A stretch of 63,281 bases of DNA, filler included, from Sluysia triapertura (Eukaryota), in the NCBI GenBank assembly GCA_046118255.1. It is 5 parts of 5 records of this genome, joined end to end, with 100 filler letters (N's around TTAATTAATTAA, not from the genome) between each part and the next. Parts side by side here need not be neighbours in the genome. Positions count along the whole stretch, not along the records: positions 11,087 to 21,856 come from JBJNIA010193692.1; 4 more parts are not named here. One strand, given 5' to 3'. Each line of letters opens with the position of its first letter. Position 1 is the first letter of the stretch. Of this stretch, positions 11,087-21,956 are shown piece after piece. The notes beneath the pieces were generated by a model. It made no database searches, was not told where the DNA came from, and saw only the letters and a list, made by a program, of their open reading frames with translations. Position numbers and translations under genes: made by a program.

Positions 11087-11815
11087 TTTAGTGCAATAAA
11101 ATGGTTTGAATCATATTTAAAAGAAAGAAGGCAAATACGTTTTATTGAATAATGTGAAGTCAAATGAGATATATGTAAAGCATGGAGTTCTGCAGAAATC
11201 AAAAATGAAAATGGAAGAAAATATTAATTGTATTGTTAAAAAGTGTAAATATCAATTAAATAAAATATCGCGTATTCGAAAAGTTATTAATAAAGAAACA
11301 GCTAAACTTATTGTTCATTCATTGATAACTAGCAACAAAGATTTTAACAAAGTTTGTTGTACTCAATTTCATATAGAAAAGTGAAAAAATTACAATTAAT
11401 AATTAATCAAGACTAATTCTCCAAGTTGGAAGAAAATCTCACGTAACATCTTATATTATAGAATTACATTGGTTGCCAATAAAAGCAAGAATGAAATTCA
11501 AAATCATAACAATAATTTACAAATGCTTACATTACAGCAGTCCTGAATATCTCTTAGAAATAATAAAAATTAGAAACCAAGATGAATATTTTATTGAGAC
11601 ATTAATCTATACGGAATCCATAGTGATATAAGCTAGGCAATAGATTATATACCGTTTATGTTTCAAAAATATACAACCATTTACCAGCGAATGTCAAATT
11701 ACTAGAAGATTATGAAATATTTAAAAAATGCAAAGTTCTTTCTCTTTCAGAATATTATTGTGAATGATTTATCTTAAGCGCTTTTGAGTACTTACACAGT
11801 AGATATGAATTAATA
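11087..11815 (+). mobile_element. L2/CR1-group LINE ORF2 3' relic with internal deletion
   Basis: WFESYLKERRQ...VKHGVLQ joins directly to the thumb/C-terminal region ETAKLIVHSLITS...ELHWLPIKARMKFK...YKCLH...PEYL. The 3' UTR is shared with 37891-38098. Confidence 0.85.
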
Positions 11816-13239
11816 TGTTATTATATGATTTTAATTGATTTTTGAATAAGTTTAAAGTGTTATTATGACATTTTAAATTATTTTATAGGGTTGTGATGAT
11901 AACCTAACAATATATTGAACAATTACAATCTTGTCAATTGACTTTTATATTCAATAAATAATTACTCTCTAGTTTATAAAACTCTTTAATATTAAATTTT
12001 AATATTTAAAATATATTTTTCAATTCTCCATTTACTTTAAACATTTGTGTAAAATAGAGAACTGCAAGACGCGATATATCTTACGCTGGATTTTATAAAT
12101 ATATTAATGCGAAAACAGGAAAATTATACGAACGTAGGTGATAGACAAATAATATAATAAAACACGAAATTATATAAAGAAATTAATTCTTTAGATAAAG
12201 TATTATGTAATTTGAAGTGTTAATGGGATCTTTAAAATGCCCATAATTACAACTGATTTTAAGTACGCATTTTACACCTGATTAAACTGGCAACAACTTA
12301 CTAAAATAAACTAACGATAATATTAAATTCTGGTCCAGAATGAATTTCTAAAAACTTGTTCTTTTTTCGCGTGATTCTATTATATTAGTTTCTTGTGTAT
12401 TTTGTTAAAAAATTATTTGATTTTAGATGGTAGCTACTTCAATCTCACGTAATACTTAAATAATTTAGTTACTTTAAAATTAAAAAGGTTTTTTAATATT
12501 GCTAAAGATTTAACTATAATTAACACTAAATTTAAACTTAAAATTAATCAATTTACTTATACGTGCTCAACCATAACTCAAAACGTTTTCATTTAATTGA
12601 TACGAGTTTTACTTTATTCCACATTAATTAAAATGTTATTCTCAGTTTGAGTCCATTTCTTCGTTAGGATATTTTGTTTTCTTATCGTCTAAGTGCGAAA
12701 ATATTACAATAACTAAATTTTAGTTGATATTCTAACATCAAAAAATTTTATAGTTAAACAGAGCAGCTTAAAACATGCAATTCTAAAGTCAAATAGATTT
12801 TTCCCGGAATAAACTTAAGTTGTTACTTCATAAAACCGCATCATTTGCAGTTTGAGAATTTGATGCTTAGAAGTTAACGACAATTTACCATAAAAACAAA
12901 TTTTACAAAAATTTAAAAAATCAAAAGTCTAAATAAAACATTTTATTCTAGTAAATTATAAATATAATACTGAGATCGAATCCCGAAATGATACTTTATT
13001 TATAAAACAGTACGTTACATGAAAGACATCATTTCAAAATCCGAAACTCATTAATATTCATATAGTCAGGTATAATAGTTTTTATTCTTATAAACACACA
13101 CAGCTAATACACAGATGCAATTGAAAAAAATAAAAAATGTCTTAAAATGCAAAAAGTCTAAGTCTTAGAAAAATGTATAATTATATTTGCAATTTTATTA
13201 AAACACACAATTTGTTACATACAAACTTATTTTAATTTT

Positions 13240-16200
13240 TTAATCTAATTGAACACTATCTATGATGTGTGTATCTGCATTACCAGTGGATCCTCCACCC
13301 GAACTGACTTTTTTCCTTTTAAATCTGGGATCTTGTAAATATGCTCTTCTTGTTCCATCGTTACCGGAAAAATGGAATCCTGAACTACCTACGGGACTTG
13401 GGCTTAGGTTTATTTCAGTATTATCGCATGGCATATCTACGATTTCAATAGGACTATGTTCAGTTCCGATCCCACCTCGAATTCTGGTGTTATCATGAAC
13501 ATTGGAACTTGGATTCACTCCCACACCAGAATTTGGATGAATAACACTAGGATGACCTTGCAATCTAGGATCACCCAACTTATTTATAACTCCATTCGTA
13601 TCAATCACCATTAAAGGATAAGGTACCTTCTGAGGACATTCAAGAGCCACTAGACGCCAAGATCGATTGTATCCACCAGCACCAATCCCAGAACCCCCAA
13701 CGACACCAGAATCTGGTACTGAATTGTAGTAAAACGCGGACATATTGATATAATCCATCATGGCGGTTTCAGCAGGCATATTTCCAGGAGAATATGTATT
13801 ACCGTACATCATGGAATCTGGAGCACCATTCGTAGCATGTGATGTGCCCTGTAAAAACTAATATTAGAAACTAATACAATTTAATTTTAAATCTACTTTA
13901 CATTGTAGATGACAATATTGTCCCTAGATTATAAATCATTCCATGGAAAACATTAAACCTACAAATCATCCAAATACGACTAGTCATAAGGTTAAGTGAT
14001 ATAATACATTACGTACCGCCATTGTTTCGAATGAAATTTCCTCTAGTACTGGCGAAATTAAAAACTAAATGTATATACCCAATACGTATTAATATCACAT
14101 ATAAATGGTAAGAAAATAAAATTTAATGAATCAAAAGTTTACATAATTTAAATAACCTTATTTAAAATTCATTTTATTTTCACTTTTAAAACAATTAATT
14201 GAACATTATTTCACGGAACCAATTCAAACAATGCATTAATTTTGATGAAAATATATATTGAAAATAAATTGTAAAATTCCTATATCTTACATTGATTGAA
14301 AAAACTTTTAACATGTTAATACCAATGCTTATAACATTATAATGCAGTTTAGAATATTTTAATATAATACACATCATTTTAAATGACTCTGTGATGTTGA
14401 ATAAATTTTATTAATAAAATGATTCTAATTTTAAATTAAATACTTATATATTTATTCTATTATAACTAAAATTTCAATACAAAATTCGAGCAAATAACAA
14501 ATCGTTTCAATGAGTAACTCTCAAATAAGAAACAGTATTCCTATAATCATGATAAATTTAGAAACATTTTCATTGAGTAACTTTATAGTGAATAATTTTC
14601 ATGGATCAAGCAACAAAGTGTAGACAGATATCATGATCCAACTGAGAACAAATTTAGCACAAAAGATGCCCCATAACAGCATATTGACACCACAATCATC
14701 AAAACTGAGAAAAAACAAGCAACTAAGAATATATTTATATTTAAAATTCCGTTTTTTGCAATTAGTCATAAAATTCTTCAATGTTTCTCGTAATATCGGA
14801 GTACTTATTTTATTTTTTTTTCATTTTATAGAAAGAATGAGAATCTGACTCGAATCTTCGTCTGAATACGATCTAGAGACAATACCAAATATATCCTTCA
14901 ATGAACTTGATGTTGCAGCTTCCAGCTCATACAGTAAAGTTTGGATTATATCAAGGAAATGGTTAGATTTTCAATAAGAATTGATTTTCGATATAAATTT
15001 TTTCATAAAATTCACATTAACGAATTTTTTCTCGAATACCTTATCTTCGTAGCAGATATAAGAATTAAGTTTGTATATTTTCAACATGTATATTAAGTTT
15101 GTATATACTAAACCTTCCACAGCATCGTAAACGTTATTCGTATTTCTTACATTTGATTCTAACATCATAATTAACGGATTAGATTTTCATCGGAGTTCTG
15201 CAGCTCGTTCTTATATTTATGAATTAAATGTTTCAAAGCTTAAAAATACCAACTTCAGTATACCAGAAATTGTTCATTGGATTTTGTATTTGAGTCCTAA
15301 TTCTCTATGAATCGTGCATTACACAATTATAATTTGAGTTTAATGTTAACTTTATGCAGGAGTTAACCTACAATATAAAATTGTTTTGTACAATAAATTA
15401 AAGATGAAATATATTTTATTAATATTAAATATTAGCAAATGCAATACTACTAACCAAACGAACACTAGGATGAGTAGCAGTTAAACTGTTATTAGGTACA
15501 TATGATCCTGGAGGTATTTCAGGAGACTTTGTTTTGGGCGAAGTTTGGATTCGATTGTGGGAGCTAATCGATGAGTCAAGGTTCTTATGTGGAGCTGAAT
15601 ATTCATCCACGTCTTCACAAGCTGGAGGCATTCCATTAGAATCGAGAATATCGACAAGTCGTTTGTATGATTGTGGAGCAGTAGAAGTTGGAGTACTTCC
15701 ATGAGAACTGGTAGCATCTGTATGTGAAGTTTTATTACTGGTGCTTACCAGATGCGCTAAGTTGTCTAAATATGGATCGGTAGAATCCTTGTTTTCATCT
15801 ACTGATATAGGACTATGAAGTGGTGGCATGCCTGGCATTGGAGGAATCATTCCGGTCGGAGGCATTCCGAATGGTGACATTCTACAAAAAATTATGTATG
15901 TTACTTTTCAATATACACATAAAATAGTTTTATATTTAACTAAATATTTAGTTAATAAATACTTAACTAAGAGCCGAAATATTCATATTGCATAAAAAAA
16001 ATTTACCCATTATTTCCAGGCATCATATTTCTCATTGGTCTCTGAAACATTGGATTGTGAGGACCTCTTGGAGGATTTCCAGGTGAAAACTGGCCACCCC
16101 CCATCGATCCAGGTCCACCAAATCTTGGATCCATCATAAAATTATGTCCAGGATTACTAGGTCCGTATCGCATCATCGGACCCCATGGAATGCGATTCCA

Positions 16201-19200
16201 ACCCATTCGAATCATATCATTTTGATTTTGTTGATTCATAGGACCAAACATACCCATTCTTTGTGGGCCACCCATCATCATCATATTACCACCAAACATA
16301 TGACTTCCACTCATCATAATGTTTCTAAAAATAAATTGCAAATATGAAGGATATTTTGTATATTTAAGTTAGTTTTGTTTTCAAATATTAAAATGTGATA
16401 AAATTTAAGTATAAAATCAAATTACTTTAGTTGATAAATGACAAGTTAGCACAATTAACACAAATACAAAGTGATTGTATAAATGAATTATATAGCCAAA
16501 CATATTATAAAGCAAAATTAATGAGTTTCATTTATATTTAATAGTATTCAGTAAACTTTAAATGAACATTTAATTTAGTCTTTAGAGCAAAACTCAAGAG
16601 ATTAAATTAATTGAAATGTAAATTATGTTTAATAGCAAAACTTAAATACTTTGAAAATACATCGAAAAACATTGTTAAAATTATTACTTAATAACGACTC
16701 TCAAATAATTGAAAAATATACTAAAAGCAAAATATAGGACTAAACAGTTATATTGACAAAAACACTATGAAGAACTAATAAAAATTTTTACAAAAAATCT
16801 CAATAAAAGATTTCTTTTGATGTTTTTCTAAATGCAGAGTATAAATAGCTAATTAATATTTTTAAGATTTTGATTCATGTTTAATTAAAATTAGTAGTAC
16901 ACCTGCGGTGCATGCAATTAGCCAGATAACACTACAAAAGGATAAATAGAAATATTTTTTCTATTTATGATAAAATATCTTAAACTGTTACGATAAAGGC
17001 CAATACACCAAAATAAAAAGCATATATAGAACCAATTTCAATCAATGCTTTTAGCATTATTTTAATTTTTGTAAATTTGTTCTAAGATATTAATAGTGAT
17101 TGTTTCACTGTTAATTTCACTTAAGTTGCAATAAATTTAAACTAACCGTTGCATATCGTCCATGTTCATATCATCTTTCATAGCATTACTAATATTAACA
17201 CTAGAATCTAAAAAAAATTTAAAATCTAACAATTATTTACTTGAATGTCCGTCAAAATTGCTTTTATCAGTTCGTTCATCGACCTAAATTAAATATAAAT
17301 GTAATTCATATCAAACCTTTTCATTTAAATATTTGTCTAGAATTTCTTTGGTTGTTTCTGTCAAAGGAGCATGAGAATATTTACAACTATCACCAGAAGG
17401 ACACATTTTTGATCCAGCATGGTACAGTTTGCATGGAAATTCCTCATGCATGTAAACACAAGAATTTCGCTTATGACATTGATGATGTTCATAAAATTTG
17501 CATAATTCTTTCACCACAGCTTCACCACTTGAATTAAAGTGGCTGCGATCTGAAGCACTACCTCCACGATCAATATTCCTATTCGAATCGTTTCCTAAAC
17601 TTGATCTACCCATTCTACTGCTATCGTTATCTCGATCATTGTCCCCACCAGAATTTGGGGTTTCATGTAAAAATTTACAATTATCACCATGACGGCAAGA
17701 ACCCATTTTGAAGTATTTACAAATTCCTTTCTTTTGTCCCCCATCGCCTCGATTTAAATTTCCACCCCAAACTCGATTAGAATTATCATTATTCGATTGG
17801 TTGCGATAATTACCAGTTCGTCCGCCTTTATTATTATTATTACTATTATTATTATTAGAATGATCATTATTATTACCCCAACCACTATACTCAGGACTAC
17901 CACCCCATTTGGCATTATCGTTATTTATATTATCATTTCCCCATCCAGAATTAGATTTCTCTTTATCCCAAGCATTTCCTTCATTATTCCAATCTCCCCA
18001 TTTATTTTCATCAGTGTTAGATTCTGATTTATTTGTATTATTTTTTGTCCCTTCATCTTCATCTCCCCAAGCTCCCCAACTATCATTGGTTTTACCTAAA
18101 TTATCACTTTTTTCGTTATTTCCATCACCCCATTTATCAACATCCTTTTTTTCACTTGTGAACTTATTTTGTTTTGTATCATTACCTTCATCACTGTCAT
18201 ATCCCCACGCAGATTTTTCTACTGGGGATCGCGGCATACTTTCACTTTTCTCATCAAAATTACCCGAACGTAAATCATCAGGCTCCTTCGAAGTACGATC
18301 AAAATTATCTGGACTTTTTGACATATTGTCTGGACTATTTGAACGAAAATTATCATTATCATCATTATTCTTATAGAACCCAAACCCGCTTCTTCCACCA
18401 CGATTACCACCACCCCTGAAACTACTATTTCCTCCACCGTTTCGAAATCCACGGCGTCCACCACGTCCTCCTCTACCGCCGCGTCGGTTATTTCCTCCAT
18501 CATCGTCGTTCCTGTTATTCCATCCACCACGATTATCACTCCGGTTATTATTCCACCCGCCTCGGTTGTTATCATCATTCAAATTACTCCAACCACTTCG
18601 ACCTTTATCGTCATCATTCTCAGTATTATTCCAACCACCTCGATTATTATCTTCATTTGAATTATTATTCCAAATGCTTCGATCTTTATTATCATCTTGA
18701 TTATTCCAACTACTCCTATCTTTATTATCATCTTGATTATTCCAACTACCTCGATCTTTATTATCATCTTGATTATTCCAACTACCTCGATCTTTATTAT
18801 CATCTTCATTATTCCAAATGCTTCTATCTTTATTATCATCTTGATTATTCCAACTACTCTTATCTTTATTATCATCTTCATTATTCCAACTGCTTCGATC
18901 TTTATTATCATCTTGATTATTCCAACCACCTCTACTGCTATTATCATTTCGATCGTCATGATCTTTTTTATTGTTCCAACTATCACAATCTTCATTATTA
19001 TCAGTTCCAAGATTTTCATTATTACTACCCCAAGCAGTACATTCTTCATTACCTGTGACTTTAGGTTTATCCTCACCATCACTATCATATGCCCATTTAG
19101 ATGTACCTTTCTCTTCTGCTACTACGGGACTATTTTCTCTTACTATATTATCGTTATGATCCCAATTAATAACTTCATCAGTTTTGCTCTTTTTCCACCC

Positions 19201-19610
19201 AGGATCATCCTCATTTTCATCTCCTTCTATATGTCGTTTGCGAACTGACTGCTGGCGTTCAAGTAGATTACTAGGTGATGTTGTAACACCATTATCACCT
19301 GCTTTAGCTTCAACCACTTGCTCAGACCCTACTGACTCATCATCAATTTCACCATCTTCTAGTTCTAATTCACTGAAAAAAAAGGAAACGCGAAATATTA
19401 CATAATTCCAAAATTAAATTAATCATTAAACAAGATTAACACTTTAAAATAAACATATTTAATATTATCAAAAGATAAATTTTCAATTATAAACCTATTT
19501 AGTTACAATATTGAACTAGAAAATTGAAAACAAATTCAAAATAAAATAAGATAAATTAATCTTAAAGTTCAATAGTACCTTATAGGTTTATCAGTATCTC
19601 CGTCAGCCAT
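13240..19610 (-). CDS. ZC3H4: ZC3H4/ZC3H6/Suppressor-of-sable family CCCH zinc-finger protein (Restrictor subunit), 7 exons, about 1181 aa
   Basis: Exons (minus): 19579-19610, 17317-19372, 17241-17283, 17147-17207, 16007-16324, 15455-15881, 13240-13848. All introns are GT-AG with matching phases (2,0,1,2,2,0); total 3546 nt. Three CCCH fingers; YMHEEFPCKLYH...C...C.YSHAPLTETTKEILDKYL closely matches ZC3H4 YMHGDFPCKLYH...FSHDPLTEETRELLDKML. N-terminal ELEDGEI motif and C-terminal DPR motifs. Confidence 0.88.
18673..18924 (-). repeat. Coding tandem repeat, 7 x 36 bp, WNN(Q/E)DDNKD(R/K)(S/G)(S/I), inside ZC3H4-like exon 2
   Basis: Seven near-identical 36-nt units are directly visible, flanked by degenerate RGGWNN units. 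Confidence 0.95.
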
Positions 19611-20580
19611 TTTGTCAAAATTAAAATTTGTCTCAATTCATATAATAAAACGAAAGTAAAATATATAGCTCAAAAAATAATACTAGCTAAAATAAAAAAT
19701 ATTATAAAAAAATATAACATTATTTATTGAAATTCAATTTCTATTTTGCACTAGGTTTTTTTCCTATTTTATGAAATAAAATTTTTTTAAATCTATATAT
19801 TTCATTTAGATATCATATAGATTTAAAATACCCAAACTCATTTAATTTCATTTCAGATTAATTTGGAGTTACATACAGGATACATAATACTTTTTGAATC
19901 AATTATTATCAATATTCTTTTTTTAAAGTATTTTAGTATTCAAACTTAGATTATATTTTCTAAGCTACAATAACTTTTACAAAATTGAAATACTTTTTCA
20001 TTTATAAAAAAGCAAAAAAATAACATTTAAATCATTTATAACTTTTTCAATCAATTGTTAGTGCATTTATAGTGTCTTGTTACGTTTTAATAATGACAAA
20101 AGTAGGTATAATACGTAAGAAACATTATTTAGCAGCAGTAGTTCAAGTGTTTATGTTTTCAAAATAAATATTTTTATGTGATTAAAACGTCTATTAAAAC
20201 AAAAACCAAAACAATAAAGAACAATTAAAACACAAAATATAAACTAAATTATAAATAATTAATTTAATAAATATCTTGGAGTTTTTATATATGCTGTTCA
20301 GGTTGAAATTTTAATATATTAATATATTTTATATTTTATAAGCATTTTTGTAATTTATGATTTAAACATCTTTGAACATGACAAGATTAAAAAAATTAAT
20401 ATACAAACAAATTTCTTTTCTTATAGTTCAGTTTTATTTTAAAATTATAATATATTGATGATTTTATTGAAATGTAAACCAAGATCTATCACTTGCGTAT
20501 ATTAAAAAGATAAATAACTACATACAAATTTATCTAAAACTTTTCAGCAAAATAATTTTAATTTTAGTACAGGTTATAAT

Positions 20581-20630
20581 CCTCTTTCTGCGGAGTTTGA
20601 TGCTCTATCCACTGAGCTAAAAGCCCCACC
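20581..20630 (-). mobile_element. tRNA-derived SINE head, 5' half (A box)
   Basis: Minus strand reads GGGGCTTTTAGCTCAGTGGATAGAGCATCAAACTCCGCAGA: Pol III A box and D-arm, no T-arm. Confidence 0.55.
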
Positions 20631-21175
20631 TAACAATTTGGATTATTATAGTTAATTATGCTAAATGGCATTTTATGCCAGTAATCCAACAAAGTATTCC
20701 TCTGAAAATTTATTTGTTATATTAATTGTTTATAGGATTAATTTCTGCCGATGTAAACATAACCTATCACTTAATTATCCTAGATATAATAAAGTTTTTA
20801 ACATTCAGATAACTGATTCTAAACAGAAATTTTTAGAAACAATATTTCAACTGCATAATTAAACATGTATTAAAATCTTGGTATAGAATTACTTGCAATT
20901 TGATTTTTCTTATTGTTATATCAAAAATAGTGAGAAAGTTGAGATTTTGATTTAATGTATTTATTATAAGACGCAGTACCTAAAATTCCTTTTTGCATAC
21001 CTTTGTTATGTGATGACATTAGCATTAAATGGTTTTGAATTAAAATATAGCTTATAAGAGAATGCACAACGAAGGTGTACACTTATCAGGAGGTTGTTTA
21101 ACAAATATCAAGATGCGGTAATAATATTGAGTTACCATGTTTACACCAAAATATTGATTTTTTTTGTTATGTCAT

Positions 21176-21365
21176 ACTATATGTAACTAAAAATATAAAA
21201 TATTTTTCTATCTATGTAACTAAAAATATAAAATATTTTTCTATCTATGTAACTAAAAATATAAATGAAATTTTTCTATACTATATGTAACTAAAAATAT
21301 AAAAGATTTTTCTATCTATGTAACTAAAAATATAAATGAAATTTTTCTATTATCTAAAAATATAA
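21176..21365. repeat. About 33-37 bp AT-rich minisatellite, about 5.5 copies
   Basis: Unit ctatgtaactaaaaatataaaatatttttctat repeated head-to-tail with small indels. Confidence 0.9.
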
Positions 21366-21956
21366 GTATTAAAATTTTTCTATTATTGATTTTCAAAAAA
21401 TAAACAACGTAATTTCTAAAAATAAAAATGAATTTTTCTAAAATTTATTAATTGATTTTTGAATTCTATGATTAATTTTGGATTTAATTAATTGATGATC
21501 TAATAATCGGATTTAAATTTAATATGGTATTAACAAGTAAATCATTATATTTAATCATTTTAAAATTAATTATTTTGTTTAAATATTATAAAATAACCTT
21601 CAACATTCAAGTATATAAATTAGCATTGACACTCTCACAATTTCACAATTTTAAATCTTAATTTAAAAATCTTTATCGTGCAAAGTTTCTGCAGTTTAAT
21701 AATAATTCTTGGTGCAATTCGACAGCAATCTTTAGTAATACAATCTTCATCGGTACAATTTAGTAACCAATATCAGTTCAATTCGACAGCAATTTTTCCA
21801 TTTTTGAATTTATATATAAATACGTTAGTTTGTTTGTAAGTTTCTTGACTTTTTTANNNNNNNNNNNNNNNNNNNNNNNNNNNNNNNNNNNNNNNNNNNN
21901 TTAATTAATTAANNNNNNNNNNNNNNNNNNNNNNNNNNNNNNNNNNNNNNNNNNNN

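Follow-up and report, generated by a model that had tools for sequence, protein, structure and literature searches.

A tryptophan-rich tract in a ZC3H4/Su(s)-type protein of Sluysia triapertura: a candidate Argonaute hook on a transcription termination factor

The Restrictor termination complex takes its RNA-binding subunit from the ZC3H4/ZC3H6/Su(s) family. In human ZC3H4 an RGG-rich region precedes the C3H1 fingers, and an EDGEI-type motif has been described in the protein as well (PMC10760643). The way in which Restrictor chooses its targets is debated; the proposals include binding to the cap/ARS2, the lack of a 5' splice site and contacts between the fingers and RNA (PMC10760643 among the sources). 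Argonaute (Ago) hooks, for their part, are carried in plants by the polymerase (Pol)-associated factors NRPE1, SPT5L and SPT6L (PMC10533338, PMC10991848), and a hook is said to be absent from animal SPT6 (PMC10991848). Here we describe a gene of Sluysia triapertura (assembly GCA_046118255.1) from a window of 63,281 nucleotides (nt), which is the whole stretch of DNA analysed and consists of five joined parts. The part at positions 11087-21856 (record JBJNIA010193692.1) contains a single gene, located on the minus strand, which is assigned to the ZC3H4/ZC3H6/Su(s) family and whose linker between the EDGEI motif and the fingers holds a long tract rich in tryptophan (Trp, W). The best single reading of this tract is a putative Argonaute hook, to which a probability of about 0.35 is given.

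The tract is located in exon 2, together with the EDGEI motif, an RGG box and three CCCH fingers (amino acids, aa, are numbered along the exon-2 translation):

17317..19372, minus strand: exon 2 (2,056 nt, 685 codons; acceptor AG, donor GT)
19345..19359, minus strand: EDGEI motif (aa 5-9), a putative short linear motif of the ARS2-recruitment type
18325..19035, minus strand: WG/GW-type domain 1 (aa 113-349, 14 W), spanning the tandem array and the RGG box
18511..18948, minus strand: repeat array, thirteen units of about 12 aa with the core R/K-[GS]-[GSI]-W-N-N and a W spacing of 11-14 aa
18373..18498, minus strand: RGG/RG box (aa 292-333)
17725..18213, minus strand: WG/GW-type domain 2 (aa 387-549, 11 W, 9 as WG)
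17371..17721, minus strand: three CCCH zinc fingers (aa 551-569, 624-642 and 647-667)

The 550 aa before the first CCCH finger contain 28 Trp, 16 of them with a Gly directly before or after, against a mean of 6.5 (standard deviation 2.2) when the 550 residues were shuffled (p=5e-5). These counts are exactly those given in an earlier note on this DNA, whose listed motifs (SWGAWGD, KWGDW, SGWGN, KWGGS and RGGWNN) are all present; its placing of the tract between EDGEI and the fingers (17764-19200, equivalent to aa 58-536), its statement that the RGG box at aa 292-333 splits the tract, and its assignment of the protein to ZC3H4/Su(s), with which the zf-CCCH_9 and PDB 2cqe matches and the names of the orthologue-type matches agree, were equally borne out. 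Outside the tract there are 3 W in the remaining 631 residues. The tract is composed of 20% N, 21% D+E, 12% G and 10% S, and W reaches 5%; before the fingers W outnumbers Y+F (28 versus 13) in a gene of about 30% GC, although the W codon is TGG.

Two modules flank the RGG box, the repeat array on the N side and a non-repetitive WG cluster on the C side. In the N-terminal half 7 of the 17 W are adjacent to Gly as GW or WG (p=0.016), and most W stand in an S-W-N or G-W-N context within a tandem DNA repeat with a period of 36/72 nt and 82-89% identity, each unit pairing one basic residue with one W. The outer, older units of the array retain R-G-G-W-N-N by means of differing codons (CGA, AGA, AGG and CGT for Arg; GGT, GGC, GGG and GGA for Gly; AAT and AAC for Asn), and the ratio of nonsynonymous to synonymous variation (pN/pS) over eight regular units is 0.37. 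Such synonymous variation, together with the low ratio, suggests that the peptide itself is constrained and that the youth of the DNA repeat is not the whole account. In the C-terminal half 9 of the 11 W are adjacent to Gly, where 3.3 would be expected (p=5.5e-4), and domain 2 has a background of Asn, Asp, Gly, Ser and Lys, this half of the tract being rich in Lys and poor in Arg, with no DNA tandem repeat besides (TTA)16. That microsatellite (17828-17875) lies within the coding exon and gives poly-Asn, and the short-read contigs of the source run stop there. A single-sequence AlphaFold2 model left the tract without secondary structure (predicted local distance difference test, pLDDT, below 50; mean pLDDT 35), but it modelled the fingers poorly as well and so does not discriminate; the tract is putatively disordered. 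Altogether it is lineage-specific and apparently selected.

The family assignment draws on the fingers. For fingers 2-3 Pfam reports zf-CCCH_9 (KIAA1064-like) at 1.4e-11, which passes the curated cut-off, and they also match PDB entry 2cqe, the finger structure of KIAA1064/ZC3H4, at 2.6e-18. With the finger block as query, an exhaustive search by HMMER retrieved 2,096 proteins; the orthologue-type matches align in two stretches, better over fingers 2-3, with identity up to 61%, and among them are proteins that bear the names ZC3H6, ZC3H4-like and suppressor of sable. Near their N-terminus the orthologues carry E[DE]GE[ILV], the counterpart of EDGEI here, and the three C3H1 fingers with an RGG-rich region before them reproduce the family architecture (as in PMC10760643). 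Word-indexed homologue searches, made with the whole exon-2 protein and with the fingers only, gave no matches, likely because of the low-complexity words and the length window (the full protein has 1,181 aa), and a search of the ESM Atlas with the whole of exon 2 gave only generic CCCH clusters of low score.

The tract sets this protein apart from its orthologues. We compared 32 orthologue-type representatives whose N-terminus was usable, as well as 120 named relatives, among which are 24 proteins of flatworm type, Su(s) of Hymenoptera, Daphnia, a hemichordate and numerous ZC3H6 of vertebrates; in all of them 0-5 Trp precede the fingers, with a median of 1. The linker from EDGEI to the fingers has 86-340 aa in other animals, where it is acidic and aromatic with an RGG part, versus 550 aa here. 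The earlier note had described the vertebrate N-terminus as not WG-rich, which was confirmed, and arthropod and even flatworm orthologues are likewise without the tract; it had also considered that a Trp-rich region might be widespread in orthologues, and the 0-5 Trp found in about 150 of them speak otherwise.

To evaluate the hook character of the tract, we re-implemented the matrix of residue composition published by Karlowski et al. 2010 (PMC2910046), together with their extension rule; the significance cut-off is 6.99 half-bits. Domain 1 scores 164 half-bits and domain 2 scores 104, values in the range of proven hooks: TNRC6A, TNRC6B and TNRC6C reach 92, 107 and 90, and the 'strong' class formed by NRPE1, SPT5L and GTB1 (SPT6L) exceeds 150 (PMC2910046). 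The same matrix gives at most 40 half-bits for about 150 orthologues of this gene from flatworms, arthropods and vertebrates, and 45 +/- 14 for 500 shuffles of exon 2, with a maximum of 95. In TNRC6 the Argonaute-binding sites require at least two W, at least 10 aa apart (PMC9262622), and the spacing of 11-14 aa in the array satisfies this. The hook reading is favoured because motif grammar, spacing and score fit it, because Trp (TGG) is used in an AT-rich gene over the mutationally cheaper Tyr and Phe, because WG is specifically enriched, and because plants have repeatedly added hooks to polymerase-associated factors.

Several observations weigh on the other side. About half of the hook score is due to Asn, which the matrix rewards and which accumulates in AT-rich genomes, and the authors of the matrix acknowledge compositional false positives such as hornerin, with 161 (PMC2910046). 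Most W of the array stand as S-W-N, that is, neither GW nor WG, and the young tandem repeat accounts for 9-13 of the W. Neither Pfam Ago_hook nor UBA-like, RRM, PAM2 or other GW182 domains gave a match even at E up to 1; a PDB search with the tract found RGG boxes alone, at E above 2, with no alignment to any GW182 peptide, and on these comparisons the tract and GW182 are not homologous. None of the collections searched, the ESM Atlas included, yielded a homologue of the tract, and the protein itself and any near kin are likewise absent from them. Public sequencing runs searched for this sequence gave 2 DNA-type matches and 0 RNA runs, and the literature searched yielded no connection of ZC3H4/Su(s) with Argonaute binding. 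The Trp pockets are strongly conserved in the metazoan AGO clade but variable in the PIWI clade (PMC12477606). Hence the Piwi part of the Ago/Piwi hook suggested in the earlier note is weakened; if the tract is a hook, its partner should be of the AGO clade rather than a PIWI. In flatworms, Argonautes of the AGO clade exist next to flatworm-specific ones, and GW182 is very divergent (PMC5594548). Finally, the aromatic density before the fingers is 7.5% here and 3-9% (Y/F) in the 32 orthologues, so that the same sticker grammar written with another residue is possible.

This last observation leads to the first alternative, in which the tract would be the N-terminal region of ZC3H4 that is conserved as an acidic-aromatic stretch with an RGG part, here in a form enlarged in this lineage, with cohesive Trp and Arg acting in self-association, condensate formation or RNA binding at termination sites, without a dedicated Trp-pocket partner. 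The comparable aromatic density agrees with this alternative, as do the RGG box placed as in human ZC3H4 (PMC10760643), the pairing of one basic residue and one W in each repeat unit, and the condensate roles raised by the authors working on plant hooks themselves (PMC10991848). However, natural sticker regions are mostly built from Y or F, the excess of W over Y+F runs against a mutational bias towards AT that favours the codons of Y and F, the strict WG at 9 of the 11 sites of the C-terminal half is unneeded for a sticker, and that half is rich in Lys and poor in Arg. We consider this explanation the main rival of the hook reading and only slightly less probable.

A neutral low-complexity expansion, produced by replication slippage in an AT-rich genome from a 36-nt unit and Asn runs in a tolerant disordered linker, would account for the 36/72-nt tandem repeat with its 82-89% identity, for (TTA)16, for the abundance of Asn (20% of the tract) and for the lack of homologues of the tract in the collections searched. 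It is an improbable explanation: R-G-G-W-N-N is preserved through synonymous variation with a pN/pS of 0.37, the C-terminal half holds 11 W without a DNA tandem repeat, and W makes up 5% of the tract despite an unfavourable base composition.

The tract could instead serve to recruit a different protein with Trp pockets, for example PAN3 or the CNOT9/CNOT1 part of CCR4-NOT, which bind the W motifs in the silencing domain of GW182; Restrictor would then be linked to RNA decay and not to small RNAs. An equal motif grammar, in which W is surrounded by G/S/N/D, is what brings CCR4-NOT to GW182 (according to the references cited in PMC9262622 and PMC10991848). Nevertheless, CIM, PAM2 and other motifs of the GW182 silencing domain were not detected in the tract, and Restrictor works on chromatin while deadenylases act mainly on polyadenylated cytoplasmic RNA, which leaves this a quite improbable partner. 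Two other classes of tryptophan motif were considered and dropped: the W-x-x-W motifs of C-mannosylation, which apply to secreted proteins only, and the Trp-acidic motifs of kinesin, COPI or AP-2, given that cytoplasmic trafficking is implausible for a nuclear factor.

The remaining question is whether the tract is present in the mature protein. The gene was modelled with seven exons, all borders being GT-AG and all phases consistent, which encode 1,181 aa with 0 internal stops; the exons were joined solely for checks of phase, stops, length and Trp count. Besides exon 2, described above, and intron 1, of 206 nt between exons 1 and 2, the model comprises:

19579..19610, minus strand: exon 1 (32 nt), with ATG at 19610, 10 codons (MADGDTDKPI) and donor GT at 19578, from the sequence and a phase check
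17241..17283, minus strand: exon 3 (43 nt), from GT-AG and phase bookkeeping
17147..17207, minus strand: exon 4 (61 nt), from GT-AG and a phase check
16007..16324, minus strand: exon 5 (318 nt), Met/Gly/Pro-rich, with 2 more W
15455..15881, minus strand: exon 6 (427 nt), Pro/Ser-rich
13240..13848, minus strand: exon 7, the last, with stop TAA at 13240-13242 and AATAAA closely downstream

The minus-strand translation from 19371 to 17317 is one uninterrupted frame of 685 codons. In this AT-rich genome the GC content is 0.30-0.41 in the exons of the gene versus 0.16-0.24 in its introns, and exon 2 has 0.31-0.41 versus 0.18-0.24 in the adjoining introns. By every sequence criterion the Trp-rich stretch is coding and lies inside exon 2. 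The short-read contigs of the source DNA run are identical to the window where listed; they end at 17818-17875 and in the tandem array at about 18705-18896, so that the copy number of the repeat is tentative. That the tract is missing from the mature protein, either partly removed as an intron or mis-assembled in its tandem array, is a highly improbable explanation which would fit the absence of the sequence from RNA runs and the breaks of the short-read contigs within both repeat stretches, but not a 685-codon frame with a chance expectation (our own calculation) of about 1e-20 or less in DNA of about 33% GC, the single frame that joins the EDGEI motif to the fingers, a GC content above the intron level, or the constraint on the protein in the repeats.

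The two W of exon 5 (16150-16230, minus strand) occur in M-G-W-N-R-I-P-W-G-P, in a Met/Gly/Pro-rich context very unlike the N-terminal tract. In a second public run, labelled as another organism, one contig of 154 nt reproduces the finger region (17423-17576) without a difference at a very low depth of 3.2; it is apparently carry-over, or the same species labelled differently, and not a relative.

The C-terminal end of the protein, encoded by exon 7, carries the motif W-R-L-x-x-L ... P-Y-P-L-M ... D-P-R-L ... D-P-R-F-K-R-K-K. Compared by phmmer with 267 retrieved proteins, exon 7 gave 16 matches, all of flatworm type, with E from 1e-11 to 2e-4: 13 bear flatworm species names and 3 are assembly proteins, and one of the 16 comes from Fasciolopsis buski (assembly GCA_008360955.1). 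In trematode and monogenean orthologues it is the C-terminal end to which the exon aligns, the common motifs being W-R-L...P-Y-P-L-M, D-P-R-L and D-P-R-F-[KR]-R. On these grounds S. triapertura is most likely a flatworm. A comparable pattern of W...P-x-P plus D-P-R motifs is present in the vertebrate family proteins, and in human the C-terminal region is the part that binds WDR82.

In the surroundings of the gene, no RNA gene was called by Rfam and ARAGORN on 11087-21856. About 1 kb upstream of the start codon, the segment 20570-20628 (minus strand) resembles the 5' half of a tRNA, with the D-arm G-C-T-C-A-G-T-G-G-A-T-A-G-A-G-C, and because neither program calls a tRNA it is probably the head of a tRNA-derived short interspersed element or a tRNA pseudogene. 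At about 1.6 kb upstream of the gene, 21180-21387 is an AT-rich tandem or interleaved repeat with a spacing of 33/71 nt and 4 copies of 66-100% identity. Downstream of the gene, 11145-11631 (plus strand) contains two short open reading frames, where Pfam gives a sub-threshold and probably spurious match to EPS8_2nd; their peptides may resemble the C-terminal tail of the reverse transcriptases of non-LTR (long terminal repeat) retrotransposons.

If the tract is indeed an Argonaute hook, the linker enlarged to 550 aa would form a disordered and multivalent platform of tryptophan ligands. Exposed Trp residues separated by at least 10 positions, in a background of Gly, Ser, Asn and Asp, would insert into the Trp pockets of the PIWI domain of one or more AGO-clade Argonautes loaded with small RNAs, which would thereby be tethered to Restrictor on nascent Pol II transcripts, and base pairing of the guide would help to select the transcripts for termination. 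Disorder, Argonaute binding and all effects downstream of it are what we infer from the tract. The complete scenario, in which ZC3H4 as a subunit of Restrictor acquired an Argonaute hook in an animal lineage so that small RNAs guide the early termination of transposon and other non-coding transcripts, is doubtful; were it true, a ZC3H4 with a hook-grade tract would provide a direct and testable link in animals between small RNAs and Pol II termination, and an animal counterpart of the NRPE1, SPT5L and SPT6L hooks of plants that would operate via termination rather than DNA methylation. Should the tract be a sticker only, it would still be a clear example of a disordered region, itself conserved, where Trp has taken the place of Tyr/Phe, and would be useful for studies on residue choice in regions of this type.

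Among the described relatives, human ZC3H4/ZC3H6 and Drosophila Su(s) also have an N-terminal E-D-G-E-[IL], an RGG-rich region and three C3H1 fingers with zf-CCCH_9, and likewise a long disordered Pro/Met-rich C-terminal half with W...P-x-P and D-P-R-[LF] repeats, at a comparable length (1,303 and 1,325 aa in that group versus 1,181 aa here). They differ in that their aromatic residue is Tyr or Phe, with 0-5 Trp versus 28 here, and in a linker about half as long. The flatworm ZC3H6/ZC3H4-like proteins (Fasciolopsis, Fasciola, Schistosoma, Clonorchis, cestodes and Cichlidogyrus) have the finger block in common with the S. triapertura protein and are alone in sharing its exon-7 domain; however, they have 465-706 aa in total, of which 25-173, with 0-2 Trp, precede the fingers, and with an identity of 25-29% over exon 7 none is a close relative.

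Among the hook proteins, GW182/TNRC6 likewise present W in a disordered context rich in G, S, N and D with W pairs at least 10 aa apart, and the motifs S-G-W-G-N, K-W-G-G and S-W-G-A-W-G of the C-terminal half presumably resemble those of GW182; GW182/TNRC6 differ in having the Pfam Ago_hook, UBA, RRM and PAM2 domains, which were not found here. Hooks on the transcription machinery have so far been documented in plants. Fission yeast Tas3 and the ciliate GW proteins are further hooks on transcription-linked machinery. The plant proteins NRPE1, SPT5L/KTF1 and SPT6L offer a parallel to the putative platform described here, a long disordered WG/GW platform on a conserved polymerase-associated factor. 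On the Karlowski 2010 matrix NRPE1, SPT5L and SPT6L fall in a comparable score class, and in SPT5L, too, the platform is made up of tandem repeats that are well conserved (PMC2910046). The host proteins are unrelated: in plants the hook is attached to a polymerase subunit or an elongation factor, whereas the putative hook described here would be attached to a termination factor, and in an animal.

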